Sequence record: LC597490.1
Direction: 5' to 3' (one strand)
DNA length: 64,000 nt
The notes below the pieces were generated by a model. That model had not been told where the DNA came from and searched no databases. It saw nothing but the letters and a program-made list of their open reading frames with translations. Shown here piece after piece: positions 8,985 through 61,780 of the stretch; within the stretch, counting starts at the first letter, position 1; every line of letters starts with the position of its first letter. The translations under genes were made by a program, and so were the position numbers.

Positions 8985-9686
8985 TTAGTCCTCCTCTGAA
9001 TACGGAACATCAAGTACAGGTGAAGTCATCTTACCAGAAGCCATAGCCTCCATAAGTCGAGAAGCATACGTACTTGGGTCAAGCTGAACGCTAAGTTTGT
9101 CTCCTGCTTTATCTTTACGAGTTGAGTTCATAAGCTCAAGAATCTTATGTCGTTTCGTCATAACTTTCTCTTTATACTCAGAAGCTTTAGAGATTTGTGG
9201 ATTGGTAATCTCATCTCCACGTTCGTTAACGGCAACGACAACATCTTGAATGAAGTCACCTTCTATAGCTAGACGATTCTCTGCACGGAATTGTTGAATG
9301 TCTAAGTCGATTAAATCTTTTGTAAGACCCATATCAACTACATTTGTTTCATCTATACCAAACTCTTCAGAGTAATCTTCAAACTTTTTCAAGATAAGAG
9401 CAATCTCTAATGAACAGCGTTCTCCATCAGGAGCATCACCAGTTTCAATAAGCGGACAAACTTGTGCGTATGGACATGCTTCCCCACGACATAACATAGG
9501 AATAGATGAGTACATACCATGTTTCGCTTCATTAGAACTTACAGTTTGACGTAAAGCTTTCATTCCTTTTTCAGAAACCTTCCAAGCTTTTGGTAAGTTA
9601 ACAGCTATCATCTTTTCTGTTTTTGGTGATAATTGGACATCCGTACGTGACAGTTCCTTTAGTAGTTCTTGTCTACTTTCCTCCAT
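8985..9686 (-). CDS. Cys-cluster protein, candidate terminase small subunit
   Basis: First gene of the packaging operon; LCRGEACPYAQVCP...RCSLE then helical segments. The ORF is solid; the function is inferred from position only. Confidence 0.5.
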   Translation of the reverse strand: MEESRQELLKELSRTDVQLSPKTEKMIAVNLPKAWKVSEKGMKALRQTVSSNEAKHGMYSSIPMLCRGEACPYAQVCPLIETGDAPDGERCSLEIALILKKFEDYSEEFGIDETNVVDMGLTKDLIDLDIQQFRAENRLAIEGDFIQDVVVAVNERGDEITNPQISKASEYKEKVMTKRHKILELMNSTRKDKAGDKLSVQLDPSTYASRLMEAMASGKMTSPVLDVPYSEED

Positions 9687-9769
9687 TTTTTCTCCCCCTT
9701 TTTGTTTATTTATTGGTCAGGCTTATTTCGAACGTAACCTTTACTTTTAAAATTATCAATATTTTTTTA

Positions 9770-9799
9770 TTGACATTTGGAAATTATCTATCATATAAA
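9770..9799 (+). promoter_or_regulatory. Candidate sigma-A promoter pointing into the sRNA cluster
   Basis: TTGACA (9770)-N18-TATAAA (9794) with AT-rich upstream sequence. Confidence 0.45.
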
Positions 9800-9857
9800 A
9801 GGTACTTCACGGCGGGTGCCCCTACCATTGTTCCTACATCGTGTACCTTTTCTACAT

Positions 9858-9888
9858 GAAAAAGGAGACCTCCGTCATAGAAGTCTCC
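9858..9888. terminator. Hairpin GGAGAC/GTCTCC flanked by A-runs
   Basis: Stem 9864-9869/9883-9888; reads as a terminator on the minus strand. Confidence 0.6.
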
Positions 9889-9895
9889 AGATAAA

Positions 9896-10005
9896 AAGAA
9901 AAAGAACCTTGTTTGCCGTCAAGGTCCTTGTCCCTACAAAATTAGCGAATTAGTTTGTGAAATAAACCCCATTAATAAGAAAGAAGGTTATTGGTAGTAA
10001 CCTCA
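9896..10005 (-). ncRNA. Predicted ~110-nt small RNA (sRNA-B)
   Basis: Own promoter TTTACA (10039-10034)-N17-TATATT (10016-10011) with TG extension; terminator stem 9905-9928 plus U-tract; no ORF. Confidence 0.6.
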
Positions 10006-10010
10006 CCTAT

Positions 10011-10039
10011 AATATAGCATAGCCCTATATCTATGTAAA
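10011..10039 (-). promoter_or_regulatory. Sigma-A-type promoter of sRNA-B
   Basis: TTTACA-N17-TATATT with extended -10 TG. Confidence 0.65.
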
Positions 10040-10117
10040 TAAAAAAGAGTCCCTTTTCCATAAGGACTCCTCTTTATCCATAAACCAATATGAAAGGAAG
10101 TTAATCAACCAATGCAC
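10040..10117 (-). ncRNA. Predicted ~78-nt small RNA (sRNA-A), antisense to 18940-18965
   Basis: Promoter TTGACA (10150-10145)-N17-TACTCT (10127-10122); terminator stem 10047-10069 plus U6; the first 26 nt are complementary to an RBS/ATG at 18940-18965. Confidence 0.65.
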
Positions 10118-10121
10118 CTAT

Positions 10122-10150
10122 AGAGTATCCATTAGAAATGGAAATGTCAA
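10122..10150 (-). promoter_or_regulatory. Sigma-A-type promoter of sRNA-A
   Basis: TTGACA-N17-TACTCT directly after the stop codon of the NHL gene. Confidence 0.6.
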
Positions 10151-11263
10151 CTACTGTTTTAAAGGAGGGACATCAAGCCATAGCTTACGTATGGAGTGAT
10201 TCCCTGTATCAGCAAACAAGTATCCCGTACCATCCCAGATGAAGTCAATTGGATAATCCATCTTTGCACTACCCTCAATACCATCTTTATATCCACGTTC
10301 ACTACCTGCAACCAGGAATGCTTCATTCTTAGGTCCACCTTTAGGGTCTTTATATACCATAGACTTATACTGATTCTCCCATACTACATAATACAATGCA
10401 TTGTCTTGTCCTATCCATACATCACTCATAGCAGCAGTAGGGTCTTTCCATCTTACAATCTCTTTAGTCTCTCTTGGAGATAAGGTTATACGTATTATAT
10501 ATCCATTCTTAGTACTTACATATATCTCATTCTCTTTAACAAAGAAGTTATAAGGATCAGGATATGTTTCGGCGCCCGTCACTTGTTTCATTTCTCTTGT
10601 ATCCAAATCATACGTAAAGAATTGGAACTGATAGCTTTTACCCAGTGCAAGGATATAGAGTTTATTCCCTACACCTTTCATACGGTAGATAGCATCCATT
10701 TGATTACGTTTCAATGTTTCCATAATACGTCTATCTAACTGATACAACTCTTTATCTTTTACAGTATAGACTTCTTTTGTAGTAGCTAGATATACTTTAT
10801 CCGTTACATACAATCCAGAAGCTATATCTGAGGTTTCTTTCGTCCGAGGTGTTCCGCTTATATCTATAATAGTTTCTATGTTCTTACCATTATACATACG
10901 AAGCTTTGCCTCACCGTGATTACCATCTATAAACCAAATGTTTTTATTCTTATCAATCTGTAGTTTACGAGGGTTTGCCATAGAGTTACTATCTTGGTTA
11001 GGTGTGCCTGTCCCTAGTATAGTAGATACTTCTTGGTCTTTCCCTTTACTAACCTTCTTACCTTGAGGTTGTCCGCCCTGTACTGGCTTCCACCAGCTTT
11101 CCTCCTGAGAAGGGTACTCAAATGTACCATCACTAACTACCTCTTGTTTAGCGGGCTGCTGGGACTGTTTAATGAGTTGCTCTGCGGTTGCAGGACTTAC
11201 TGTACCACCTAGCGAAGGTACTAATAAAGTCAAAGCCATCCACGCTGAATTTACTATATTCAT
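10151..11263 (-). CDS. Secreted NHL-repeat beta-propeller protein
   Basis: Signal-peptide-like N-terminus (MNIVNSAWMALTLLVPSLGG..ATA); NHL-like MANPRKLQIDKNKNIWFIDGNH and GYKDG..AKMDYPIDFIWDGTGYLFADTGNHSIRKL. Confidence 0.8.
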   Translation of the reverse strand: MNIVNSAWMALTLLVPSLGGTVSPATAEQLIKQSQQPAKQEVVSDGTFEYPSQEESWWKPVQGGQPQGKKVSKGKDQEVSTILGTGTPNQDSNSMANPRKLQIDKNKNIWFIDGNHGEAKLRMYNGKNIETIIDISGTPRTKETSDIASGLYVTDKVYLATTKEVYTVKDKELYQLDRRIMETLKRNQMDAIYRMKGVGNKLYILALGKSYQFQFFTYDLDTREMKQVTGAETYPDPYNFFVKENEIYVSTKNGYIIRITLSPRETKEIVRWKDPTAAMSDVWIGQDNALYYVVWENQYKSMVYKDPKGGPKNEAFLVAGSERGYKDGIEGSAKMDYPIDFIWDGTGYLFADTGNHSIRKLWLDVPPLKQ

Positions 11264-11375
11264 CTATACACCACTCCTTATGATATATAGTATAGTCCAA
11301 ATTTATGTAATTTATGCAAATCCTTCTTGAAGTTTTCAGAAAAAATGGATACGATTTAAGAAAGGAGGGGTATAC

Positions 11376-15975: not shown

Positions 15976-16079
15976 CAACTAGGGGACTAACCATCCCCTC
16001 TAAGGCGTAAGGAGGTGAATCGTCTTAGTACTACTCTGTAAATCTATATGCAGAGAATCACACAAGAGGAGGAAGTTAA

Positions 16080-16511: not shown

Positions 16512-17423
16512 ATGATGATGAAAGAATTAGTAGGAATGATCGTATTGTTAGTAATGGCTGGTGGATTAGGGTATGCATGGTGTGCGTACTTAAACAGAAA
16601 AGAAAGAGAAGATGTAGAACGTGTCGCTGGTCAGTTACAAGGTTATCAAGCATTACTAGGTGGAGTGGAGTACGAAGATGGTTCATTCGAATCTAAAGTA
16701 GAGACAATGGATGGTCGTGTAACAAATGTATTAGTACGTAATATGCCTTTTGGTAGTTTAGAAGAAGCATTAGCAGGTGGATACATGGAGCCTAAAACTC
16801 GTAAGTTCTTAACTTCATTAATTGATGAATTAGATACTGTAGAAGCATTTAAAGAAGAAAAGGTGGAGCAAGTAGCAGCAACAGCAGAAGTACAAACAAG
16901 TGTAGAAAGACACCAAGAACGTAAGAACATTGAAGTTATTGATGGCGGCGTTACTCATGGAAAGATTACTGTATATCGTCCTTGCATGGTTCGTATCCCT
17001 GGAACAAAGAGCTTTGGTATTCGTATTCAGCAAGATGAGAAAACAAACTATCTATACATCTCTAATGTTTACTATCATGCAGAAGACATCGCAGACACAA
17101 GAAGATTAGAGTATGACATGACTAATGTGGAACACGGTAAATCATTCAATGAAACATTCATGCAAAAACATTACAAACGTTTTGAAAGAGAAATGCAGGA
17201 GATTATTTCTATTAGTAATGACATCGAGAGATTCAATCGCTTAATAGATGATGAGATGATTGATGCTAGTGATTTATATAACATTGTATTACTTCCACCT
17301 AAAGTATCTCTTATAGAAAAAGAAGAAGAGGTAGTAGAAGAAACAGTGGAGGATATCGAACTACCAGCAGAACCAGAAAAAGAAGTGTTGGTGTTTGAGG
17401 AAGCAGATACAATCAAGCATTAA
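16512..17423 (+). CDS. Membrane-anchored hypothetical protein
   Basis: N-terminal TM helix LVGMIVLLVMAGGLGYAW; acidic tail. Confidence 0.8.
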   Translation: MMMKELVGMIVLLVMAGGLGYAWCAYLNRKEREDVERVAGQLQGYQALLGGVEYEDGSFESKVETMDGRVTNVLVRNMPFGSLEEALAGGYMEPKTRKFLTSLIDELDTVEAFKEEKVEQVAATAEVQTSVERHQERKNIEVIDGGVTHGKITVYRPCMVRIPGTKSFGIRIQQDEKTNYLYISNVYYHAEDIADTRRLEYDMTNVEHGKSFNETFMQKHYKRFEREMQEIISISNDIERFNRLIDDEMIDASDLYNIVLLPPKVSLIEKEEEVVEETVEDIELPAEPEKEVLVFEEADTIKH

Positions 17424-18719: not shown

Positions 18720-19185
18720 CTGGCAGTAGCATCCTATAGAACGAGTTAGGATGTGAGGGGTTATCCAAGGAGATAACTAGGTTGGGTGGGCCAGCGGAAA
18801 TTAGGAAAGGAAGTTTTGCTTTATCGTTTTATACCGTCCCTCTTGTAGAGAGACGGGGGACTCTGTTGTTGAAGTGAGAGACGGGGGTCTTGAAGCATCA
18901 ACGGGTCTAGAATTACGCCCTATCAACATAGTAGAAACAGAAAGGAAGTTTATTAACCAATGCACTCTATACACAGCACACTACTTACTCTTTTTATCTC
19001 AATTCCGAAAGGGGTTGAGAAATAACTCACCTAGAAAGGAGGTGATAACAAGCATTTGCACGAACACGATTGCATCAGCAGTCGGACTTTAATTAGGGGA
19101 CGGACTTGTTTCTGGAGTTGATTGACACGCCGATCTCCCAACGTATTGAAAAATTATAAAAAACTAAAATGAAAATCAAAGGAGA
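18720..19185 (+). promoter_or_regulatory. Long structured leader with a candidate uORF (18960-19025)
   Basis: Hairpins CATCCTA/TAGGATG, CCGTC/GACGG, TCTCAATTCC-GAAA-GGGGTTGAGA; GAAAGGAAG SD and a 21-codon ORF MHSIHSTLLTLFISIPKGVEK. Confidence 0.55.
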
Positions 19186-19893
19186 ATGTTTATTATGATG
19201 ACAATTAATGTATTGAAAGCACGTATGGAAGAAATGAAATTAGCGGAGAAAGCAAGCAAAGTTGTGGACGCTAGTGTGAAAGCAGTAAAAGGAAGTATGC
19301 CTGTAACAAATAGAAAGTTTGAAGAAACAAAAGAAGGTTTAATCATCAATGACCTTCATGCAGATTTACGTATCTCTCGTCTTGAGTCAGCTCTAGTTAA
19401 TGCAGGAATGATGTCTGAAGAAGAAGTAGATGCAGATGTAACACAAGAGCTTGTAGAAACTCGTAAGCACATGATTGAGTATGAAGCTCAAATGTTAGAA
19501 GAAAAGAAAGCGAAAGATTTAGAGGAGGCGAAAGCTAAGATGGCTCAACGTATTGAGAAAACAAAGACTCATGTTCGTAACATCACTGGATTCTTTATGC
19601 CAAACATCACTGTTGTAAAGGAAGAAAAGAAAGAAGAAGTTGTTATGACTGAAAGAGAAGAGGCATTGGCGGCAGAGTTAGAAGCAGCTAATCTTCGTGC
19701 TCAGGAAATGGAACAACAACTGATTGTTATGCAAGAACAAGTGAATAGCATTAGCAATCACTTCAAACCAGCACCACAGCAAGAAGTAGTACAACCAACT
19801 GGAGAGCAACCAGCAACAAGACGTTTAAGAGGTCAGTTTGCAGACCCAAGTGAGTCTCAGTTTGATTACAAAGCTGGTAGTGAAGAAGCATAA
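19186..19893 (+). CDS. Coiled-coil hypothetical protein
   Basis: 235 aa, E/K/A-rich heptads. Confidence 0.8.
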   Translation: MFIMMTINVLKARMEEMKLAEKASKVVDASVKAVKGSMPVTNRKFEETKEGLIINDLHADLRISRLESALVNAGMMSEEEVDADVTQELVETRKHMIEYEAQMLEEKKAKDLEEAKAKMAQRIEKTKTHVRNITGFFMPNITVVKEEKKEEVVMTEREEALAAELEAANLRAQEMEQQLIVMQEQVNSISNHFKPAPQQEVVQPTGEQPATRRLRGQFADPSESQFDYKAGSEEA

Positions 19894-20023
19894 GTTTTAG
19901 GTTACTAATTTAATTGATTAATTGTATTCAGCTTAACAGTGAGGAGAAGAAGGGTGAGACGCCTTCAACAATATAGGTCTAGCTCCTGACCAATTAAATG
20001 AGAGCATATGAAAGGATTTTATC

Positions 20024-22492
20024 ATGACTAACACTACAACTACTACTAACACAATCGCTGTAAACGAAGGTATGAAAATGAAAGATTTACGTGCTATTGG
20101 TAAAGGTTTCGGCGTTAAAGCTCCTGTAGGTACAACTAAGAAAGCATTAGTAGAAGCAATCGTTAAAGCTCAAAAACAATTAAATGAGGAGATGGTAGTA
20201 ATGAAAGAAGCTAAAACAATCGTAGAGGAAACTGTAGCAACAACTAATAATACTAAAAACGAAATGGAGATGGTTGAAATGACAAAAACTAATAACGAGG
20301 TTAAAGCAAACGAAGTAGTATTACCAGCAGAGGTTTTAGAAGCTAATCAACGTGCATTAGATAACAGCAAAGGTAATGCATTAGATGTAACTCAACGCAA
20401 CCCACACACATTCTTTACTGGTCACACTAATCATGTTCAAAGTGGTGTAATGCAATACATTAATGAAGGTGCTCGTCGTTTCATGGAACATCAAGAGAAA
20501 ATGAACTTAGAAGTAACTGATTTCATGTTTGTTAACAATGCAAAAGCAGATGCATTTGGTCGTAAAGTAATTGGTGTTCTTCAAGTACGTGTAGGCGCTG
20601 GTGTTATGGTTGTTAAGCAATGGGAACAAACTCCAGAAGCATTAGCAGCTGGTAAACGTGGTGAGTTCGTATGGAAAGCATTCGAGAACCATACTTACAC
20701 TAAAGCAGCTCCAACAGCTCAAGGTATCCGTGTTTACAAAACAGATGTATTCGCACCACTTATGGAAGGTGAAGGTATCTTAACTTTACCAATCTATGAA
20801 AACAAAGAAGGTTTAGCTCACGTTTCTCTACCAGTAACTCGTGCAGAAAAAGAAGGTAAAGTAACATTCTATGAAGTATTCCGTTCTCGTCGTGCTGGTG
20901 CAGAGTTCTTCTCAGCTCGTACAAATGAAGTAATCAATGCATTATTAACTGCATCTGCTCGTTTACTACGTGCTCAGTTCGTAAAAGCTAATCCATTAAA
21001 CCGTGGTGGAATTAAAGAGTCTTGCCTAAACTGCCGTTTCATCAAATACTTCCCAATCAAAGACGGCGTTACTGATGATTTAGAAACAGACAAAGGTTCT
21101 TTAGTTGACACTACAAAAGAAATTCAATCTGGTAAAGCTGGTATCGACTACAGCTCTGCTCGTTGGATGCAACAATTATCTACAGATGAGTTAACTGGTA
21201 ATGGTTCTAACTTACCACAACACTTCTGCCCAGTTGTAGGACAATATGTTGGTAAGAAAGCAGTTATGGACTTCAAGAAATTAAGTGAAGCAGAATCTAA
21301 TCAAGTTGAATTAGAAGAAGGCGTGTTCACTTATGTACCAGCAGGTAAAGTAGTAGTATCTGGTCGTGTAATGGATTACAACGAGTACTTAGAAAATGAA
21401 TTAGAAAACGTTGCTTCTGATTGCAACTACTACCACATGAACGAACCAAAAGGTGCTCATGTTGTGGCGGCTGAGAAAGTAGAAGCTCGTGAAGAACGTG
21501 GAACAGATGCAAACGGTAACTATGCTGAGAAAGTATATGTATCTCCAAACTATGTAACAAATGCAAAACCAGAACGTATGCCTGTTCAAATGCGTGTAAA
21601 TGGTGTGTGGGTAAATGCATTCCCAGGTCAAGTAGACAATGCTGATGCTGTTCGTATCTATGGTTTAGAAGGATACAAAATGATGTTCTCTGAGAAAGCA
21701 ATGGATCGTTTCGCTGCTTATGGTTTCAACTATGTTCCAACTAAAGAAGCTGTAGATGCTGAGAAGTTTAACTTCAACGTTGTATTACGTGGTAGCTACA
21801 ATACATTAATGAACAACAATGCTTCTGAAGAAGATGTTGCAGAAATCGAAAGCTATGTAAAAGAAACTCCAGCTCACATCGTTGAAATGTTCAAGAAACG
21901 TGCTGATGGTGCTCAATTACAAGAACGTTGGAACAAAATGGTTTCATTCTTCGAGCGTCAACAAGGATGGAAAACTGTAGAAACTCGTGCAGACTTCAAA
22001 GTTAAGTTCTTTACTGAGAATGCTGAAGGACGTAAAGTATTAGACTCTGAAGCAGGAGACTTCTCACCAGCAGCATTATTATATGATTTCAAATGGAACG
22101 AAGAAAACGAAAATGTTCTTCACACTCCAGGTGGAACTGTAATTGACTACAAAGGTGGTTCTGTAACAATCAATGAGAATGGTGAAGAGAAAGAAGTAGT
22201 ATACAGCGGTATCACTGGTAAAGAGTTTGTTCGTAACATTGACAGCGAGAAAGGTGACCGTTTAGTTGAGTATGTATTAACAACTGGTAATGATGTAGTA
22301 TTCGCAACTGACGAAACAGAAAACATCACAGAAGAAGATGTACGTCTATTAGCAGAAGCTATGCAAATTCTTGTTCAACGTGAAATGAACAAATATGTAT
22401 GGGCTGTTCGTAAAGAGGAAGAAGGAGAGCGTAAAGCTAAAATCAACTTCTTATCTGATGAAGCTAAATTATACATCATTGAAAATCTGTAA
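20024..22492 (+). CDS. 822-aa multidomain protein with Rho-N-like helices, SpoVG-like segment and Cys cluster
   Basis: MKDLRAIGKGFGV..TKKALVEAIVKAQ (Rho N-terminal-like); LEVTDFMFV..KVIGVLQV..LPIYENKEGLAHVSLPV (SpoVG-like); CLNC..CP..C. Domain calls by eye. Confidence 0.6.
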   Translation: MTNTTTTTNTIAVNEGMKMKDLRAIGKGFGVKAPVGTTKKALVEAIVKAQKQLNEEMVVMKEAKTIVEETVATTNNTKNEMEMVEMTKTNNEVKANEVVLPAEVLEANQRALDNSKGNALDVTQRNPHTFFTGHTNHVQSGVMQYINEGARRFMEHQEKMNLEVTDFMFVNNAKADAFGRKVIGVLQVRVGAGVMVVKQWEQTPEALAAGKRGEFVWKAFENHTYTKAAPTAQGIRVYKTDVFAPLMEGEGILTLPIYENKEGLAHVSLPVTRAEKEGKVTFYEVFRSRRAGAEFFSARTNEVINALLTASARLLRAQFVKANPLNRGGIKESCLNCRFIKYFPIKDGVTDDLETDKGSLVDTTKEIQSGKAGIDYSSARWMQQLSTDELTGNGSNLPQHFCPVVGQYVGKKAVMDFKKLSEAESNQVELEEGVFTYVPAGKVVVSGRVMDYNEYLENELENVASDCNYYHMNEPKGAHVVAAEKVEAREERGTDANGNYAEKVYVSPNYVTNAKPERMPVQMRVNGVWVNAFPGQVDNADAVRIYGLEGYKMMFSEKAMDRFAAYGFNYVPTKEAVDAEKFNFNVVLRGSYNTLMNNNASEEDVAEIESYVKETPAHIVEMFKKRADGAQLQERWNKMVSFFERQQGWKTVETRADFKVKFFTENAEGRKVLDSEAGDFSPAALLYDFKWNEENENVLHTPGGTVIDYKGGSVTINENGEEKEVVYSGITGKEFVRNIDSEKGDRLVEYVLTTGNDVVFATDETENITEEDVRLLAEAMQILVQREMNKYVWAVRKEEEGERKAKINFLSDEAKLYIIENL

Positions 22493-22526
22493 GAGGTAAG
22501 TAGTAATCGCATAACAGTGAAGACTC

Positions 22527-22565
22527 GGAGGGAGTGAGAAGCCCCTCCTTTTTATTTTGCCGCTA
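22527..22565 (+). terminator. Intrinsic terminator followed by CCGCTA
   Basis: GGAGGG/CCCTCC stem, T-run, CCGCTA at 22560. Confidence 0.7.
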
Positions 22566-22579
22566 AAGGAGAGAGTTAA

Positions 22580-24361
22580 ATGTTAACTAAATTCGTACAA
22601 ACAAATGAAACAGGTGTAAGTATTCTACAGGTAATCAACAAAGGATTGGTAACAGTAACAGAGAAGTCTGCATATCAGGATGATGTAGCAGGTGGATATG
22701 ACCACATTGGTTCTGAATCAAGTAATGATGTATTTGTAACTATCACAGCAGAGGAAGCAAATCAATTAGATGATGCAGATATTGTGACAGCAGCTTTTGA
22801 GATTAATGGTCCAATTGGTGTAGTCAATGGTAGACAACATGCAGCACGTTTACAGCATCTATTTGAGGAAGAGATGGAATGGGTTATTGCTCACTTCGAA
22901 GTTATTCTTGAGAAAGAAGGAACACGAGTATATCAATCCAAGTTAGAAGACCAAGGGTATGCAGAAGATGTAGAAGCTTGGCTTCAAGTTAACGTAAGCA
23001 AAGAACCAGGTTTATCGGTGAAAGAAGAGACAACTAAGATTACGTATAAGGAAACTGATACATTGAACAAGATTGGGTTACCAGTCGGTACAATGATTAA
23101 AGCAGGAGAAGAGTCCTTACGTATTATTGGTGAAGATACAGAGAACAAAGAGTTAGATACGTATGTTGTATTGCAAAAGCCAGATGGTGAGTTGGTATCT
23201 ATTCCAGCGCCAATCATCTTGGATTTGCAACAACCAAAGAAAGAGGAAGTCAAGAAGGCATTATCTCTAGAAGAAGAGATGGAGATGATGCGTGAACAGA
23301 ATGCGAAGAAGTCTATGGGTGAGCTACATAAGGCAGCCCCACAACAAGAACCTGTAAAAGAAGAAAAGAAAGAAACTGCATTAGAAGCATTTACAAAGAA
23401 AGCTAATCAAACTAAAACAAACAATTCTAAGGAGGAAACAAAAATGACAGCAGCTACAGTACGTTTCGGAGGACAAGCAACACAAGGAGCAACAGAAGGT
23501 AAAGCAACAGTACGTTTAGGTGGAGCAAAAACTAATAACACAAATAACATGGAAACTAAAGGAGAGAAAACAATGACAACTACTACTAACACAACTAAAG
23601 GAAACCAACCAACTGTACGATTCGGAAAAGGAACTGCTACACAAACAACTGCACCAGCAATGGAAGGTTTCGGAGTAGAAGGCGTTCAATTACCAGTATC
23701 AACACCAGCAGTAGCACCAAAAGGCAAGTTCGATGATTCTCAATCTTACCGTGGTGGTAATGTTCCAAATGCAACTCGTAAAGCTTGGTACTTAGAAAAG
23801 TTAGCTGAAGACAATCGTATCGTTACAAACATCTTAGAGTTAAAACGCAATATGAACTTAGGTATCGAGTCTATTAAAATCTACGATCCAGTTGCAATGT
23901 TCCAATCTGGTGAACTTAAATTCGCTAAGAACGAGAAGTGTGTGGCAATCGTAGAAGTAGTATTAGCTGGTGGAGAAATGGTTATGCCTTTCGATATCTT
24001 TGTGAGCGATGACGGTGAAAGCTTATTCTCTCCAAACATCAAACGTATGAAAACTTTCAAAGGTTGGGTGTCTAAATATCAAATGAGCGTATCTAACTTA
24101 ACTGAAAGCACTGTAACATGCTGCGGTAAACGTATCGAAGTAAAAGATGGTAAAGAGTTTGCTTGCCCAGTATGTAAGAAAGAAATGGTAATGGCAGTTA
24201 ATCGTGTAGTATTCAACCGTACAACTGGTGAAGAAGAGAAAGTACAAGTACAAACTTACAACAACCGTAAGCAACTACTTCCATTCAACTTCCAAATTGG
24301 TGAGAGCTTACTGGCTCAAGTAATGGTATTTGCTCACGACTTCTTTGGATACGAAATGTAA
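22580..24361 (+). CDS. 593-aa multidomain protein with a C-terminal SpoVG-like domain and Zn-ribbon
   Basis: Low-complexity linker with three TVR[FL]G repeats; GIESIKIYD..AIVEVVL..; TCCGK..CPVC. Confidence 0.6.
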   Translation: MLTKFVQTNETGVSILQVINKGLVTVTEKSAYQDDVAGGYDHIGSESSNDVFVTITAEEANQLDDADIVTAAFEINGPIGVVNGRQHAARLQHLFEEEMEWVIAHFEVILEKEGTRVYQSKLEDQGYAEDVEAWLQVNVSKEPGLSVKEETTKITYKETDTLNKIGLPVGTMIKAGEESLRIIGEDTENKELDTYVVLQKPDGELVSIPAPIILDLQQPKKEEVKKALSLEEEMEMMREQNAKKSMGELHKAAPQQEPVKEEKKETALEAFTKKANQTKTNNSKEETKMTAATVRFGGQATQGATEGKATVRLGGAKTNNTNNMETKGEKTMTTTTNTTKGNQPTVRFGKGTATQTTAPAMEGFGVEGVQLPVSTPAVAPKGKFDDSQSYRGGNVPNATRKAWYLEKLAEDNRIVTNILELKRNMNLGIESIKIYDPVAMFQSGELKFAKNEKCVAIVEVVLAGGEMVMPFDIFVSDDGESLFSPNIKRMKTFKGWVSKYQMSVSNLTESTVTCCGKRIEVKDGKEFACPVCKKEMVMAVNRVVFNRTTGEEEKVQVQTYNNRKQLLPFNFQIGESLLAQVMVFAHDFFGYEM

Positions 24362-24363
24362 TT

Positions 24364-24392
24364 GAGGGGGCTAGTCCCTCTCTTTCTTTTTT
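24364..24392 (+). terminator. Intrinsic terminator
   Basis: GAGGGG(GCTA)GTCCCTC plus T-rich tail. Confidence 0.7.
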
Positions 24393-24443
24393 ATTGTTGA
24401 TTAATACAAAAACTTATAACATATACCCAGGAGGAATTTAACC

Positions 24444-26522
24444 ATGACTAAATTTGCGAAAAGCTTTTACATTGTAGGAAACCACGATACGGATACATTA
24501 CCAGTAAGAAAGTATGTTATTGACAACATCAGAAGAGACTTTGATTTAGAAGAAGTACCACATGAAGCAGTTGGAAGTTTAGCAGTATTATTATCAGAAA
24601 GAGATGCAAGATTCCGTGTAAACAACGGGCAAGGTAAGTTGTTCTGTTCTTGTGGATATCAAGGTGATGCAGTAACAGTATTTGAAAAGGTAGTTGCGGA
24701 TGATGCCATCTTCCATGTAGGAATGCTTGATGAGGAGAGAGAGGCAGAAGAAAAGAAAACATTTGAACATAACTTCTATGATTTAAAGAGAATCGTGACA
24801 TGCCCAGAGTGTGGTAGCACAGAGCATGAGATTGTAAATGTGTCTGGTGTGGACGCTGTAAAAAATCCTATGTATCTGAAAATCTATCATAATGAGAATG
24901 GTATTTCATTGTCTTATGGTATCCAGAGTTATTACTTCAATCCGAATGTAGAGAAGCTTGGTACGAAGCTGGGCCGAGCACGCATTACATTCTCATATAA
25001 AACAAACATGTTCTACTTTGTACGTGGTGGTAAAGTCCGTAATATCTCTTACGGTACATTCCCAAGTAATACAGCATCAGGAGAGTTCTATGATGTATTC
25101 CAACATGCAAACTACAATGAGGAGTGGAAAGCAATTGTTAAAGAATTCAAGGAGACGATTATTAAGCATATGGGGGCTTTTATTCCAGAAGAGTTGGTTA
25201 ATCTAACAAATGGACACAACCTGATTTTATTCATGGCTAGTATTGTTTGTCCGCACTTAACGATTCTTCCATTCAAGCCAGATACACATGGTTTACGAGA
25301 TGGAGCAAAAGTATTAAGAAAGCTACCACTGAAGAAGAAAGCTGTTACACAGTTCTTAAATGGACCAGTGACAAAAGCGATGACTCCATATGTGAACAAC
25401 CAAGGAGATATTCGTTTCTTTGCAATGGTTACTTCTTTAGTAGAAGACCCGAACTATCGTTTAACATTGTTAAAAACATATAAAGAGTATTGCGACAAGC
25501 ATATCAGAAACAATTGGGGCACAGATAGAATTTCCTCAGTGAAGTCATTTGATATGGTAGTAAATGAAATGAAAAACTATGATTTCCCGCAGGAAGCTAT
25601 TGATTGGTTAAAGTCTCTACATCCAACAGATGCAAGTATGTATCATGCAATGGTTCGTATGAGTACAGAACCAGTTAAGGAGTGGAATCATGAGAAGAGA
25701 GAAATGATTGATACAGGGGAGAAGAAAGTGAATCTTAGTAGTGTAACTTGGTTGACTCGTGACTCACACCGTATGTATCAGGATATCATTCAGGCTCTAC
25801 CAGGTTATGACCTACGTTATAGTGGGAACATGAGAGAGACGCATGACAGACTGACTAGAGACTATGGTCGTGTGAAACAAGCACCACGTACAATCCCTTA
25901 CTCTGAAGATGAAAGAACATATCTAACTGCTTCTTATGGTGGATATGACTTCGTATTACCAGAGTTAACAACAGAGTTAGTAGAATGTGGTCAGGCATTA
26001 GATATCTGCGTAGGTGGATATGGTAATGAGGTAGCTGAGAAACGTACACTGATTATCTTTGTGAAGAAAGAAGATAAGTATGTGGCGTGTATTGAAGTAA
26101 CTCCTGATGGAAACATGTCTCAAGCAAAAGGATATGGCAACAATAGATTCCGTCCACTAGCAGATGATGTGATTGATGCAATTGCACATTGGGCTAATAA
26201 TGGTGGCGTGAGTCTAAGCACGTATGACATGAACTCACACAAACGTAGACTAGAAGAAAAGTACGCACACTTATTCGAACGTCCTGAGTTCTTAGTAAAA
26301 GAATTAGGTAATCCAGAAGAGTCTGTACGTCTAGAGATTACACAAGAGATGCTTGAGCAAGAACCAGTAAGAGCAGAAGCATATCAACCAGAGCCTAATC
26401 CATTTGATGCACTTGCTTTAGAACCTGCACCTGTATATGGAAGAGCACCAGTAGCAGCTAATGTGGGACAACCAATTATGGCAGAATTGATTGGAGACCT
26501 TAACGATGACCTTCCATTCTAA
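24444..26522 (+). CDS. PcfJ-like domain protein with N-terminal Zn-ribbon
   Basis: CSC..CPEC; C-terminal LPELTTELVECGQALDICVGGY..ACIEV..SQAKGYGN fits the PcfJ pattern. Confidence 0.8.
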   Translation: MTKFAKSFYIVGNHDTDTLPVRKYVIDNIRRDFDLEEVPHEAVGSLAVLLSERDARFRVNNGQGKLFCSCGYQGDAVTVFEKVVADDAIFHVGMLDEEREAEEKKTFEHNFYDLKRIVTCPECGSTEHEIVNVSGVDAVKNPMYLKIYHNENGISLSYGIQSYYFNPNVEKLGTKLGRARITFSYKTNMFYFVRGGKVRNISYGTFPSNTASGEFYDVFQHANYNEEWKAIVKEFKETIIKHMGAFIPEELVNLTNGHNLILFMASIVCPHLTILPFKPDTHGLRDGAKVLRKLPLKKKAVTQFLNGPVTKAMTPYVNNQGDIRFFAMVTSLVEDPNYRLTLLKTYKEYCDKHIRNNWGTDRISSVKSFDMVVNEMKNYDFPQEAIDWLKSLHPTDASMYHAMVRMSTEPVKEWNHEKREMIDTGEKKVNLSSVTWLTRDSHRMYQDIIQALPGYDLRYSGNMRETHDRLTRDYGRVKQAPRTIPYSEDERTYLTASYGGYDFVLPELTTELVECGQALDICVGGYGNEVAEKRTLIIFVKKEDKYVACIEVTPDGNMSQAKGYGNNRFRPLADDVIDAIAHWANNGGVSLSTYDMNSHKRRLEEKYAHLFERPEFLVKELGNPEESVRLEITQEMLEQEPVRAEAYQPEPNPFDALALEPAPVYGRAPVAANVGQPIMAELIGDLNDDLPF

Positions 26523-26835
26523 TATATATGGCGCCCCACGAGCGAAGCGAGTAATATTCTTCTTTTTGTGCCAATGGCTGATAAGCCACATATATGCAAA
26601 AAGAATTAAAGTTATCGTACAGAATGTGTACCCTGCGAGGCAACGAGCAGGTAGTACATACTCTGTACACCCTTTGAACAGTCCTGAGCTACGTAGTAGC
26701 GAGTATAAACGAGGAAGGACTGTTCTATGTAAGGGGATGGTTCTTAATCGGCTGGTGACACGCCGATCCATTTTATTTGGCCTTCGGCTGCCAGTGTTCC
26801 GCCTTCGGCTATACAGGGCAGTGGGTATCCATTCG
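26523..26835. other. GC-rich, highly palindromic non-coding region
   Basis: Nested stems GTACAGA/TCTGTAC, GAACAGTCCT/AGGACTGTTC, ATCGGC/GCCGAT, two GCCTTCGGC units, GGTATCC/GGATACC. Confidence 0.6.
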
Positions 26836-45811: not shown

Positions 45812-46243
45812 ATGTTGCCAGGATTTACTGGTGTATTGCATTATGAACAACAAGAAATTCCTTTTTATTTAAATCCGACCTTCAATGAAGATGCTGACGC
45901 TATTGAAGCATTAGAGCCAGGTGAATCACTACTTCTTTTTTATGATAGTCATGAACAAAAAGACAAGGATTACCTAATTAGAACCATATTGGAGGAATTC
46001 AGTTATTCATTAGAAGATAAACTTTGTAACTCTGAAATAAAGGAATTGATTGATAGGTTGAAAATAGATGATATAGGACCTACTCAACATTTCATAGATA
46101 AAGACTTAGTAGAGGTTCAAGTTCATGAAGAAGAAATAAAAATGCAAGATTGGGCTACTGGTGGATTCTTTAAAATAACAAATCCTGAGTATAACAATGA
46201 AAGTTATATGTACAAAATGAAATCGGAATTAGAAACTAGGTGA
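45812..46243 (+). CDS. Acidic hypothetical protein with the C-terminal motif
   Basis: Start moved to ATG 45812; ends NNESYMYKMKSELETR. Confidence 0.78.
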   Translation: MLPGFTGVLHYEQQEIPFYLNPTFNEDADAIEALEPGESLLLFYDSHEQKDKDYLIRTILEEFSYSLEDKLCNSEIKELIDRLKIDDIGPTQHFIDKDLVEVQVHEEEIKMQDWATGGFFKITNPEYNNESYMYKMKSELETR

Positions 46244-52050: not shown

Positions 52051-53526
52051 ATGGAAGTGGCAAAATTAGTAGGTATCGCTCGTGTTTTAAAAGGTGCTCG
52101 TTTTAAATGGTCTGGGGAGGATTTTGAAGTAGTAGTAGCAGGTTCAAACCCAGTCGTTAAAACAAATCTTCATGGTGAGGATGTAGAAGTTGGCAATCTT
52201 TCTACTTTTATTACAGAAGATGTTGCTGATGTAAAAGTAATTGTTGGTGACGCATTCGTTAAGCCTGAAGCACCTTCACACGAATCAACTATCAAGGAAA
52301 AATTAAAAGCTAAAGCTCGTTCGAAGCAATCATCAGTTTCAATTGATGCATCTGGTATTCATATCAATGCTAGTGCAATCTCAACGCCTGTTACTGCTAA
52401 ACAGCAATTACGTACTGACACCAAAGTAGGTAAGCTTGCATCAGAAGTTGGCAAGATTAAATTAGGTTCTGGTTTAGTAAAAGGTCGCTTAGATTCAATT
52501 GAAAATGCAGCTTATGATGCAAAATCAATTGCTGAAGAGTCTCAACGTACAGCTGGCTTCTCAGCTAAAGTATCTAAGGAAGCATCTCGCATCCAAGATG
52601 AAAAACTAGCTGAAGTATCTCGTCGTGTTGGAAAATTAGAAGTTAAAAATGAACTTACAAAAACTAAGGAGGAAAATTCAATGAACTTACAACAAAAATT
52701 CGCTCAAAAATCTCAAGAGGTAGCTAACCGTAATAACTTACAGGAGAAATTCGCTGCAAAATCGGCTTCAAAACAAAAAGGTTTCGGTTCAATCGTTAAC
52801 AACTTCAAAGGTTTATTCGGTAAAGTGGAAGGTTTATTTGCATTCTCACCACTTACAGGTGGTTTAGCTGTTAAGAAGAAAGATGGCGGTTTAGTAGCTT
52901 ATAAAGATGGTGGTTTAACTGATGTTTCTGGTTTATCTTTAGACTTCAATGTACCAGCATTCAAGTTACCAGTAGCAGCAAAAGATGTAAAAGCTGGAGA
53001 CGTTGTTCTTCATAACGGTGAAGCAGCTTACGTTATCGGAGTTAACGATGACTACTTAGAAACTATCGTACCAGAGAAAGCTTCTAAAGGTTCTGTATTA
53101 CCTGTTAAGAATATCTTATTCGGTCAATCATTCTATGTTGTTGTTAAAACATTAGATTCAGCTGGTAACGGTGGTTTCGACCCAATGTTACTTCTTGCAT
53201 TAGGTGATGGTAACAAAGACGACTTACTTCCACTTCTTTTAATGGGTGGAGGTTTAGGCGGTAACGGTCAAGCAGGTGCAATCGACCCAATGACTTTAAT
53301 GTTACTTCAAGATAAAACTGATGACTTATTACCACTTATCTTAATGCAACAAGGTGGTTTAGCAGGTCAAGGTTTTAATCCATTATTCTTCTTACTAGGA
53401 GAAGATAAAGGTTCAAAATCTGATTTACTTCCATTACTTCTTATGCAACAAGGTGGCGGTCTTTTCGGACAAGCAGCACCAGCTCCAGCTGCACCAGCAG
53501 TAGAAGTTAAAAAAGATCAAAAGTAA
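52051..53526 (+). CDS. 491-aa protein with C-terminal DLLPLLLM/GG repeats
   Basis: C-terminal half paralogous to 53665-54477; in-frame internal AAGGAGG + ATG at 52681. Confidence 0.82.
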   Translation: MEVAKLVGIARVLKGARFKWSGEDFEVVVAGSNPVVKTNLHGEDVEVGNLSTFITEDVADVKVIVGDAFVKPEAPSHESTIKEKLKAKARSKQSSVSIDASGIHINASAISTPVTAKQQLRTDTKVGKLASEVGKIKLGSGLVKGRLDSIENAAYDAKSIAEESQRTAGFSAKVSKEASRIQDEKLAEVSRRVGKLEVKNELTKTKEENSMNLQQKFAQKSQEVANRNNLQEKFAAKSASKQKGFGSIVNNFKGLFGKVEGLFAFSPLTGGLAVKKKDGGLVAYKDGGLTDVSGLSLDFNVPAFKLPVAAKDVKAGDVVLHNGEAAYVIGVNDDYLETIVPEKASKGSVLPVKNILFGQSFYVVVKTLDSAGNGGFDPMLLLALGDGNKDDLLPLLLMGGGLGGNGQAGAIDPMTLMLLQDKTDDLLPLILMQQGGLAGQGFNPLFFLLGEDKGSKSDLLPLLLMQQGGGLFGQAAPAPAAPAVEVKKDQK

Positions 53527-53552
53527 TTAACAATAAAAAAATGATGAGATGT

Positions 53553-53584
53553 AAAAGAGGGGTGTAACCCATCCCTCTTTTTTA
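53553..53584 (+). terminator. Intrinsic terminator
   Basis: AAAAGAGGG/CCCTCTTTT stem plus T-run. Confidence 0.75.
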
Positions 53585-53664
53585 TAATTTGTTTCATAAG
53601 TTCTTTTATAAAATATAGAAGGACTTACAAACAAATTATAGGAAAATAGAGGAGGAAGTTTATT

Positions 53665-54477
53665 ATGAAAAACTTATTCGCAGGTGTTAAAGGTCAATTT
53701 GGAAAGGTAGAGAACGTATTTGCATTTTCACCAGTAACAGGTGGTCTAGCAGTTAAAGTAGGTAACGGTCAGTTTGTTGCATTCCAAGATGGTCAATTAG
53801 TAGATGTACAAGGCTTAACTCTTGATTTTAAAGTTCCAGCGTTCAAATTACCAGTTGTTGCTTCTGAAGTTCAAGCAGGTGATATCGTATTAAATGGCGC
53901 TGAATATTTATATGTAACAGGTGTTTCTGATAACTACGTAGAAGCTGTATCTCCAGCTCGTCGTGAAAAAGTAAATGTGTTACCAACTACAAATCTATTC
54001 TTTGGTAAACCATTCTTCACTGTTGTTCGTACTATGGACGGAGCAGGTGCTGGTTTTGACCCAACAATGCTTTTATTAATGTCTGATGGTGGAAACAAAG
54101 AAGATTTACTTCCATTCTTACTTATGTCAGGTGGTTTAGGTGGCGCTCAAGCTGCTGGTCAAATCAATCCAATGATGCTTATGGCACTTCAGGATTCAAC
54201 TGACGACTTATTACCTCTTCTACTTATGCAACAAGGTGGCGCAATGGGTGAAGGTTTCAATCCATTAATGTTACTTGCAATGGGTGAAGGTAAAGGCGGT
54301 AAGTTAAATGATTTACTTCCACTTATGATGATGCAAGGTGGAGGCGCTGCTGGTGCAATGAACCCAATGATGATGATGATGCTTATGGGCGACGGTAAAG
54401 GTGGCGACATGAAAGACATCATGATGATGCAAGCATTATCTGGTGGCAATGGCTTCAACTTATTCGGAGCTAAGTAA
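53665..54477 (+). CDS. 270-aa protein with DLLPLLLM and NPMMMM repeats
   Basis: Paralog of the C-terminal half of 52051. Confidence 0.82.
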   Translation: MKNLFAGVKGQFGKVENVFAFSPVTGGLAVKVGNGQFVAFQDGQLVDVQGLTLDFKVPAFKLPVVASEVQAGDIVLNGAEYLYVTGVSDNYVEAVSPARREKVNVLPTTNLFFGKPFFTVVRTMDGAGAGFDPTMLLLMSDGGNKEDLLPFLLMSGGLGGAQAAGQINPMMLMALQDSTDDLLPLLLMQQGGAMGEGFNPLMLLAMGEGKGGKLNDLLPLMMMQGGGAAGAMNPMMMMMLMGDGKGGDMKDIMMMQALSGGNGFNLFGAK

Positions 54478-54683
54478 TGAATTTCGGTAATATGAGTCCT
54501 AAAGAGTTACGAGCTATGGCGAGACAGTTGAATGCCATGGCTCAAGCTCTTGAGTTGGCTCAGGACCCAGCGAAGTTCATGCAAAAGAAAGTTCGTTCAA
54601 AAGTAAATGGTACAAAGCGTAAAATGAAAAACCAAGTTATCAACAGTGTTTTGGGTAGTGCTCTTTCCAAGAAGTCTAAGTAG
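54477..54683 (+). CDS. Basic hypothetical protein
   Basis: 68 aa; TAATG coupling. Confidence 0.72.
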   Translation: MNFGNMSPKELRAMARQLNAMAQALELAQDPAKFMQKKVRSKVNGTKRKMKNQVINSVLGSALSKKSK

Positions 54684-54787
54684 TATTATCATAGATTTTA
54701 AGGAAAGCCATGTAATGGATGTAAGTTCATAGGAACTTTATCATATAAAAAATAAAAAAATTGACAATTGAAAGGGAGTTATTAATT

Positions 54788-55639
54788 ATGCGTAAAGTAG
54801 TATATGGTTCAACAACAGTAGACATCGAGGACAACAACTTAACAGTGGAGGACATTCGTGAAGTAATGTCTGAAACATACCCTGAGTTAGCAAATGCAAC
54901 ACACACTGAGCGTGATGGTGTTATTGAGTTTAAGGTACAGGCGGGCACGAAAGGTGCTCTTCGTGTTGTTAAGTATGGTTCAACTACAATCGACATCGAA
55001 GATGATGCGTTAACTGTTAATGATATCCGTGAAGTTATGTCGGAAACTTACCCTGAATTGGCGAATGCATCTCATACACAAGAGGGTAACGTTATCGAGT
55101 TCAAGGTGCAAGCTGGTACAAAAGGAGCGCTCCGTATTGTAAAATACGGTTCGACTTCTATTGATATCGAGGACGATGCTTTAACAGTCAACGATATCCG
55201 TGAGGTAATGTCTGAGACTTACCCAGAGCTTGCTAACGCTTCTCATACGCAAGAAGGGAACGTTATTGAGTTTAAAGTCCAAGCAGGTACGAAAGGTGCT
55301 CTCCGTGTTGTAAAATACGGAAGCACTTCTATCGACATTGAGGATGATGCATTGACTGTAAATGACATCAGAGAGGTTATGTCAGAAACATATCCTGAGT
55401 TAGCAAACGCTTCTCATACTCAGGAAGGAAATGTCATCGAATTTAAAGTACAAGCTGGTACAAAGGGTGCTTTACGAGTAGTAAAATATGGTTCTACTAC
55501 AATTGATATCGAAGACGACGCACTAACTGTTAACGATATTCGTGAAGTAATGTCAGAAACGTATCCAGAACTAGCAAATGCATCTCATACTCAAGAGGGC
55601 AATGTGATCGAATTTAAAGTGCAAGCAGGAACTAAAGGT
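54788..55639 (+). repeat. Five tandem 171-bp coding repeats
   Basis: Units begin at 54788 (168 bp), 54956, 55127, 55298, 55469; proteins nearly identical, many third positions differ. Confidence 0.95.
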
Positions 55640-55687
55640 GGTCTTGAGTTCTTCAAAGCTATTGCACCAAAATTAAGAAAGAAGTAA
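54788..55687 (+). CDS. Penta-ubiquitin-like precursor (PRTRC protein C-like units ending AGTKG)
   Basis: ATG 54788 after AAAGGGAG; 56 + 4x57 aa repeats with YPEL and AGTKG, plus a 15-aa tail. Confidence 0.88.
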   Translation: MRKVVYGSTTVDIEDNNLTVEDIREVMSETYPELANATHTERDGVIEFKVQAGTKGALRVVKYGSTTIDIEDDALTVNDIREVMSETYPELANASHTQEGNVIEFKVQAGTKGALRIVKYGSTSIDIEDDALTVNDIREVMSETYPELANASHTQEGNVIEFKVQAGTKGALRVVKYGSTSIDIEDDALTVNDIREVMSETYPELANASHTQEGNVIEFKVQAGTKGALRVVKYGSTTIDIEDDALTVNDIREVMSETYPELANASHTQEGNVIEFKVQAGTKGGLEFFKAIAPKLRKK

Positions 55688-61345: not shown

Positions 61346-61780
61346 ATGTATACAACTTTTAGGCAATTAATTAAAGATATGGGTTTTGATAAGACAGCTT
61401 CCGAATTTACCATGATTCTAAGGGATATCGAAAAACTGTTGGATTTTAAGATACCTATCTATATATTAGGTGAAAATCACAATAAACATTGGTATTATTT
61501 AATAGAGCATCCTGATGGATATGAAGGTGCTAATCATGTTGTTATATGTGCTTTAAGAAACATAAAGGTTTATAGAGAAAAAGAAAAAAGCCCGTATTCA
61601 GATTGGGAAGATTTTAAACTTCTCATTGATGAAGATGGTGACTTTACTGGTGATTATACTGATTTTGAATTAATGTTTAAAAATTATTGGTGGATTTCAT
61701 CAGATAAACCATTAACTTTGTTTCATTATGAAAATGAAGCACATGTGAAAAAGTTAAATAAAGAAACCCCATTTGATTGA
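61346..61780 (+). CDS. Hypothetical protein with a variant C-terminal motif
   Basis: Start moved to ATG 61346; ends ENEAHVKKLNKETPFD. Confidence 0.78.
   Translation: MYTTFRQLIKDMGFDKTASEFTMILRDIEKLLDFKIPIYILGENHNKHWYYLIEHPDGYEGANHVVICALRNIKVYREKEKSPYSDWEDFKLLIDEDGDFTGDYTDFELMFKNYWWISSDKPLTLFHYENEAHVKKLNKETPFD

Follow-up and report, generated by a model that had tools for sequence, protein, structure and literature searches.

The spacer downstream of gp122 in a Bacillus jumbo phage raises the question of whether a short stretch within it encodes a small RNA that acts in trans on the leader of a gene block some 9 kb away. The window that we analysed is a stretch of 64,000 nt corresponding to bases 124001-188000 of Bacillus phage vB_BceM_WH1 (WH1; LC597490, 229,829 bp; host B. 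cereus), a jumbo myovirus of ~230 kb. The lysis, virion and packaging genes of this phage lie on the minus strand, from gp064 to gp122, and its replication, nucleotide-metabolism and many unknown genes occupy the plus strand from gp123 onward. Two sigma factors are encoded (gp018 and gp030), together with RecA and other recombination proteins. The spacer of interest (9687-10150, 464 nt) separates the late gene gp122 (10151..11263, minus strand, 370 aa) from gp121 (8985-9686, minus strand). The putative target falls within the 476 nt that separate gp136 from gp137, ahead of the plus-strand gp137-gp140 block (19195..26522), the products of which comprise 232, 822, 593 and 692 aa; the 822-aa product has a Rho_N-like N-terminus and the 692-aa product a PcfJ domain. 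Pfam and PHROG family searches gave no match for gp121, gp122, gp136 or gp137, and a tRNA search of the window found none.

For comparison we used two near relatives, phage Edson (~91% DNA identity) and the metagenome contig MTEW01004222 (MTEW), and a 229-kb Logan contig, ERR14864770, in which the gp122 homolog is 75% identical to that of WH1. More distant relatives were KLEB27-3, L046 and L044, with gp122 identities of ~40%. Whole-genome motif searches were run on the public phage records LC597490 and OM634661. A search of IMG/VR anchored on the gp130 protein gave no relatives, and no papers were found in the literature under the two phage names. In ERR14864770 a weak LAGLIDADG match indicative of a homing-endonuclease-like insertion lies near the gp122 homolog (L042 8073-8720), and in KLEB27-3 a small gene that appears endonuclease-like by eye is located between gp001 and the spacer (L004 1393-1803). 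Since relatives carry homing-endonuclease-like insertions there, the region around the gp122 homolog seems prone to DNA insertion or exchange.

An earlier note on this DNA had pointed to a 24/26 match between positions 10092-10117 (copy 1) and 18940-18965 (copy 2), both read on the plus strand and in direct orientation. The coordinates and letters given there all proved accurate and the match was verified; in a duplex between a minus-strand RNA from copy 1 and the plus-strand leader, the two differences become one U-U mismatch and one G-U pair. No 26-mer match was obtained in 100 shuffles, and the whole WH1 genome holds exactly two copies, which counts for the antisense reading. When the 464-nt spacer was compared with the 229.8-kb genome, copy 2 was the sole significant match (E = 0.001). 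In self-comparison of the window the pair grows to 32 columns with one gap (10092-10122 versus 18940-18971), scoring 41.9 bits against top scores of 31.9-37.4 in 20 Markov shuffles. Further short direct repeats with comparable scores occur in the window as families of SD-plus-start regions, so that matches of this kind are inflated somewhat by SD-like sequence. Counting against the antisense reading, the similarity overruns the predicted RNA start by about 5 nt, into the −10 element, as expected of a copied piece of DNA. Beyond this genome, a 17-mer probe of IMG/VR gave 24 matches, all attributable to chance and with flanks lacking similarity, and an element probe of a genome collection gave two unrelated chance matches and no copy from a Bacillus host.

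Two other readings of the repeat were discarded. The first, in which the copies flank a segment able to invert or to be excised, is at odds with the order of genes between the two sites, which is identical in WH1 and KLEB27-3, and with the weak internal symmetry of the 26-mer. A plus-strand promoter at both copies was rejected because neither has an SD-like word followed by TACTCT; that arrangement is present in two nearby spacers.

If copy 1 is transcribed from the minus strand, a promoter should lie directly upstream of it. A TTGACA-N17-TACTCT promoter had been proposed, and both hexamers are located as described, TTGACA at 10150-10145 and TACTCT at 10127-10122 on the minus strand, with a spacer of 17 nt. 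The promoter as a whole (10122..10150, minus strand) has its −35 element immediately 3′ of the gp122 stop codon, followed by a 13-nt spacer, a TGG triplet and an A-TAC-type −10. A generic sigma-70 scan did not call this promoter, whose −10 agrees with the sigma-70 consensus in 3/6 positions. It conforms to a recurrent phage pattern, namely a TTGAC-type −35, 13-14 nt, a (T/A)GG triplet and a (T/A)TAC-type −10, instances of which precede gp121, gp078, gp074, gp073, gp072 and gp032, as well as gp123 on the plus strand. Searching the WH1 genome for this pattern gave 11 sites, including the promoter of the unit, against 0.77 in shuffles (maximum 3), and 8/11 are intergenic. The pattern was drawn up after the candidate had been seen, so the agreement is a fit rather than a prediction made blind; independently, the same TGG-A-TAC form is present at the gp123 site. 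Counting against the antisense reading, the second-to-last base of the −10 is unique among the pattern instances. The promoter is kept in WH1, Edson, MTEW and ERR14864770, and the −10 of the last is nearer to the sigma-70 consensus than that of WH1. Judged by its fit to a recurrent pattern and its retention at 75% gp122 identity, the candidate promoter is better than the earlier note could have known.

Other sites of the pattern lie at record positions 135327-135355 (plus strand; window 11327-11355), at window 9731-9759 (minus strand), and, on the minus strand, at record positions 61377-61406, 52853-52881, 52545-52573, 45825-45853 and 17072-17100. At gp078, gp073 and gp072 the promoter is followed directly by a terminator-like hairpin and the ribosome-binding site comes only after it, an order that suggests a stop-and-restart or read-through design.

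Downstream of the promoter, the earlier note had placed ~78 nt and then a terminator, and our analysis is in agreement: the predicted RNA would start near 10117 and end, after a hairpin and U-run, at about 10040 (10040..10117, minus strand). An open 5′ part would be followed by the intrinsic terminator (10040..10078, minus strand), a hairpin plus six U residues. The predicted fold has ~37 unstructured nt at the 5′ end and then a 19-bp hairpin (z = −2.9). The terminator hairpin is kept in the four genomes, with three pairs changed on both sides in a compensatory manner. Apart from the promoter and terminator, conservation of the RNA body across the four genomes is limited to a CU-rich motif complementary to an SD-like 11-mer, which forms the 3′ half of copy 1 (10092..10117, minus strand); the 5′ part of the RNA differs between the WH1 clade and ERR14864770. 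Because the promoter, the CU-rich motif and the terminator with its compensatory changes are kept in four genomes, a ~78-nt minus-strand RNA running from 10117 to 10040 is likely.

A second source of the same sequence is also predicted. There is no terminator between the gp122 stop codon and copy 1, so the antisense sequence would be transcribed whenever gp122 is, as part of the predicted gp122 3′UTR, and this supply holds whatever the status of the internal promoter. A small unit directly 3′ of the gp122 homolog is absent in KLEB27-3, L046 and L044, whose spacers are not alignable with that of WH1. Rfam searches of the window at gathering thresholds gave no family, and searches with E up to 5 around both loci gave only chance-level matches.

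The rest of the spacer, between 9687 and 10040, contains what looks like a second minus-strand small unit, with a promoter-like site bearing a TG motif at 10039-10011 and terminators at 9929-9902 and 9888-9864. WH1 and Edson have 100% identity over a block at ~9745-9895, from which MTEW departs by a single base. This block includes a long hairpin (9800-9853) with its U-run on the plus strand, preceded by TTGACA at 9770; the hairpin is partly kept in ERR14864770.

On the target side, copy 2 is located in a structured leader (18720..19194, plus strand), which is 93.3% (blastn) to 97% (mean column identity) identical to that of Edson; the values for the gp122-gp121 spacer are lower, at 81% to 89%. 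At the 5′ end of the leader we identified a three-way-junction RNA element (18720..18800, plus strand) with a 5-bp closing helix and two hairpins. Its G-rich junction strands are invariant down to phages with only ~40% gp122 identity, and the two hairpins vary in sequence and length with pairing kept, seven pairs being changed on both sides. In the alignment, which was trimmed since the ends of the untrimmed MAFFT/RNAalifold version misaligned KLEB27-3, 93.7% of cells are paired, compared with about 35% when partners are slid. A covariance model finds the element once per genome and retrieved a new instance in L044 in which both hairpins have been rewritten. The other instances are all on the minus strand, at L042 1441-1524, L041 10185-10252, L046 3508-3575 and L044 5454-5533. 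The element has no Rfam match. The leader motif was found neither in IMG/VR nor in the genome collection, and in metagenomes it gave one true relative, MTEW01004222, plus one chance match. By its covariation, the element is a new RNA motif without a known family, and it looks like a riboswitch-like or protein-binding site.

Directly 3′ of the junction element lies site A (18805..18815, plus strand), a third copy of the 11-mer shared by copies 1 and 2. Copy 2 (18940..18965, plus strand), the predicted target, follows 124 nt downstream and comprises an SD-like stretch, an 11-nt spacer, an ATG and one more codon. The match was said to cover the SD and AUG of a 21-codon ORF in the leader of the gene block, and it does so; the ORF (18960..19025, plus strand) has 21 codons plus a stop. 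Its SD-to-AUG spacing of 11 nt is long, which counts against the antisense reading. Homologous small ORFs of 22-36 codons are present at the same leader position in Edson, ERR14864770, L044 and KLEB27-3, where the ORF is annotated as gp280, and the arrangement of an SD, 9-11 nt, an ATG and a small ORF is found at the same place in these four and in L046. The peptides have in common a start region of the form His/Lys-Ser/Thr-Ser/Thr, and those of WH1, L044 and KLEB27-3 end in Pro-Lys-Gly/Glu-Val. Its recurrence in distant relatives sets the small ORF apart from a uORF arising by chance; it looks like a real, fast-evolving small gene.

Short words elsewhere in and near the leader also recur. The word AGGAGGTGA occurs at 16010, 16420, 17439 and 19037 (plus strand), so that 4/6 of its genome copies lie in the gp132-gp137 spacers. 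None of these four has a properly spaced start codon, and two have TACTCT 16 nt further on; these words may represent ribosome-binding sites of the stabiliser type, mini-ORFs or promoters of another class. A 13-mer, TGACACGCCGATC, is common to 19123-19135, in the 3′ part of the gp137 leader, and 26756-26768 (plus strand), in the long spacer before gp141, where it is part of a terminator-like hairpin. A word resembling it is present in the leaders of L044 and ERR14864770.

To assess how well the predicted RNA and the leader could interact, we calculated the energetics of pairing. The net gain on cofolding the RNA and the leader segment is about −36 kcal/mol. When the whole genome was scanned in 130-nt tiles, the leader was the best non-self partner of the RNA, the next tiles being only ~7 kcal/mol weaker by this crude measure. 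Within the leader the best site is copy 2 in WH1 (−41.5 kcal/mol), Edson (−38.1 kcal/mol) and MTEW (−34.4 kcal/mol), and in ERR14864770 it is a different SD-like stretch.

The pairing was then compared across relatives. Copy 2 shows one pairing-neutral C/T difference among WH1, Edson and MTEW. Copy 1 of Edson and MTEW carries a 1-nt deletion and two substitutions that are unmirrored in copy 2, leaving 23 pairs plus a bulge without compensatory substitutions, so the pairing is kept but not demonstrably selected. The three genomes agree fully in a 16-nt core of copy 1 and in the promoter stretch next to it, in a spacer that is otherwise only ~81% identical. Confinement of the 26-nt pairing to this clade counts against the antisense reading. 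ERR14864770 has the flanks of copy 1 with an unrelated middle, and its leader retains copy-2-like sequence; its best spacer-to-leader match is a 10-nt SD-like word. The long match was either gained in the WH1 clade or lost from ERR14864770. No antisense match is present in L044. In KLEB27-3 and L046, the best genome-wide short match of the leader is a different 16-mer (E = 0.02), found in KLEB27-3 in the leader and in the spacer before the gp121 homolog (L004 2174-2189 and L003 3062-3077). Its orientation is opposite to that in WH1, so that an RNA in the late direction would be identical and not complementary to the leader, which likewise counts against the antisense reading.

Site A changes along with copy 1. 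In WH1 the two have an 11-mer in common, and in Edson and MTEW both are 1 nt shorter and have four more identical bases, giving 14/14. Several adjacent positions of site A in Edson and MTEW differ from the form found in WH1 and KLEB27-3. This co-variation fits selection for pairing and a short gene-conversion tract equally.

Overall, the minus-strand unit is predicted to be a credible phage-encoded regulatory RNA of a known general kind. We propose, at a probability that falls a little short of even, that it is a trans-acting antisense RNA preventing translation of the small ORF and perhaps also affecting the gene block downstream. According to this model, the ~78-nt RNA would be made from the promoter directly after the gp122 stop codon, with the 3′UTR of the gp122 mRNA also carrying its sequence, and would end at the conserved intrinsic terminator. 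Its unstructured 5′ 26 nt would pair with the leader at 18940-18965 through 24 pairs, including one G-U, and one mismatch (the match itself being 24/26), covering the SD-like stretch and AUG of the small conserved ORF. Ribosomes may thus be kept off the start of the small ORF, or the duplex may be cut, or both, and expression of the small ORF would be lowered. The stability or read-through of the mRNA continuing into gp137-gp140 might be lowered too, and the CU-rich half of the RNA could also touch site A (18805-18815). Transcription of the unit, pairing in the cell and an effect on expression are what we infer beyond the observed match and its uniqueness, the fit to the promoter pattern, the terminator, and the conservation of the unit and of the small ORF. 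Of the trans-acting translational switch suggested in the earlier note, the discrete promoter-terminator unit, the open 5′ match and the SD/AUG target stand up in silico, whereas the pairing turned out to be clade-specific and uncompensated. The proposed timing of the block has fared less well: because gp123, the first gene of the plus-strand cluster leading into the leader, has the same promoter pattern, a late-versus-middle switch is not established. In a more elaborate and rather doubtful version of the model, the small RNA would form part of an internal RNA circuit, in which it is driven by the phage's own promoter pattern, carries a 26-nt match copied from its target leader, co-evolves with site A, placed directly 3′ of the three-way-junction RNA, and acts together with these elements to control the conserved micro-protein gene and the block.

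The features that count against antisense action raise the possibility that the RNA exists and its match to the leader is an incidental result of DNA exchange, with copy 1, site A and copy 2 being a small family of SD-like repeats homogenised by short-patch gene conversion. A piece of the leader would have been copied into the spacer between pre-existing microhomologies and would have no selected regulatory role. We consider this a serious, if on balance unlikely, explanation. It would account for the clade specificity of the long match, with ERR14864770 keeping the copy 1 flanks around an unrelated middle alongside a copy-2-like leader, for similarity that continues beyond the predicted start site, and for the lack of compensatory substitutions between copies 1 and 2. 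The several adjacent changes that bring site A of Edson and MTEW to 14-nt identity with copy 1 resemble a conversion tract, and the RecA and other recombination proteins of WH1 are in keeping with such exchange. However, co-transcription of two RNAs able to form a 24/26 duplex would hardly remain without effect, the core of copy 1 and the promoter stretch have stayed constant in three genomes while the rest of the spacer diverged, and the repeat occurs in no other spacer of the genome.

Retention of the CU-rich motif in all four genomes, as the only such part of the RNA body besides promoter and terminator, could instead reflect a general SD-complementary RNA that acts on several SD-like sites, the additional 15 nt that pair in the WH1 clade being an add-on. 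Its targets would be site A, copy 2, the start of the ssb-like gp282 and the start of the first post-leader gene in ERR14864770. The 11-mer is indeed found at 18805 and 18940, a 13-mer containing it lies 18 nt before the gp282 start, and the best match in ERR14864770 is the SD of the gene after the leader. We regard this explanation as improbable, since 10-13 nt matches to SD-like words are at chance level (E 0.2-1.3) and complementarity to generic SDs would mean no specificity. It is also very improbable that the repeat acts as DNA, serving in spacer and leader for recombination or as the site at which a phage regulator binds. Both copies are non-coding and in the same orientation, and the 16-mer of KLEB27-3 and L046 links the same regions in the other orientation, to which a DNA site would be indifferent; nevertheless the 26-mer is only weakly symmetric, the sequences linked in one clade bear no relation to those in another, which would be unexpected for sites of a conserved protein, the genome has no further copies, and the equal gene order of WH1 and KLEB27-3 gives no sign of inversion or deletion. 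The remnant of a type I toxin-antitoxin pair, an idea raised in the earlier note, in which the small ORF is a former toxin and the RNA its antitoxin, is rejected as extremely improbable. The likeness extends to the general layout only, an antisense RNA over the start region of a small ORF. The 21-aa peptide has no hydrophobic stretch of membrane-spanning length and varies freely, its hydrophobic run being interrupted in Edson and absent in ERR14864770; the RNA gene lies 8.8 kb away, neither overlapping nor adjacent, and the ORF is within an operon leader conserved in relatives that lack the antisense partner.

Returning to the proposed antisense RNA, we compared it with known systems. To our knowledge, nearly all regulatory RNAs known in phages come from a small number that infect Gram-negative hosts. 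The OOP RNA of lambda and the sar RNA of P22, antisense RNAs lying over the start region or the end of a gene, are transcribed opposite their targets, and their pairing is perfect and local. Like the RNA predicted for WH1, these are phage RNAs of ~70-80 nt with their own promoter and terminator, and, as proposed for WH1, they pair with phage mRNA and reduce the expression of genes in regulatory regions (PMC12197685). They differ from the WH1 RNA, the gene of which is 8.8 kb from its target, with 24/26 pairing and in a 230-kb Bacillus myovirus. That 2025 review of phage regulatory RNAs enters sar as trans in its table and does not mention Bacillus at all (PMC12197685). The closest likeness to the proposed action of the WH1 unit, the masking of a small-ORF start, is provided by P1 c4 RNA. 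In P1 and P7, the antisense c4 RNA is encoded separately from the site that it targets in the icd-ant leader; by masking the ribosome-binding site of a small ORF upstream, it controls the gene that follows. The c4 RNA arises by processing of the operon transcript that also contains its targets, a short distance downstream, and is part of a temperate-phage immunity system. Published mention of c4 RNA is found in PMC8546580. Unlike OOP, sar and c4, the WH1 unit belongs to a Bacillus jumbo phage.

Resemblances are also found outside phages. Base-pairing sRNAs of Gram-positive bacteria use C/U-rich seeds that mask SD sequences, and sRNAs derived from 3′UTRs occur as well. The predicted WH1 RNA similarly has an open, pyrimidine-rich, SD-complementary stretch followed by a terminator hairpin, and, like the 3′UTR-derived sRNAs, it lies directly 3′ of a gene and could be supplied by an internal promoter or by the parent mRNA. 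It is unlike the Gram-positive sRNAs in being phage-encoded, in belonging to no Rfam family and in having a pairing region much longer than a typical seed. With type I toxin-antitoxin pairs it has in common the complementarity of a small RNA to the start of a small ORF; unlike such pairs, it has non-adjacent parts, a peptide lacking membrane-like character and an ORF that relatives keep without the RNA partner.

A conserved sRNA unit with a clear candidate target would open post-transcriptional control in a little-studied lineage to testing. Comparison of the clades, with a pre-existing small RNA unit and a new long match in one of them, may illustrate how pairing can arise. The covariation-supported motif in the leader, without a known family, may prove more original than the sRNA itself.

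Self-comparison of the window also revealed internal direct repeats of 66-78% identity at 52807-55645, for example 54803-55469 versus 54974-55640 and 52807-53459 versus 53689-54344. These are probably repeated protein domains or duplicated genes.
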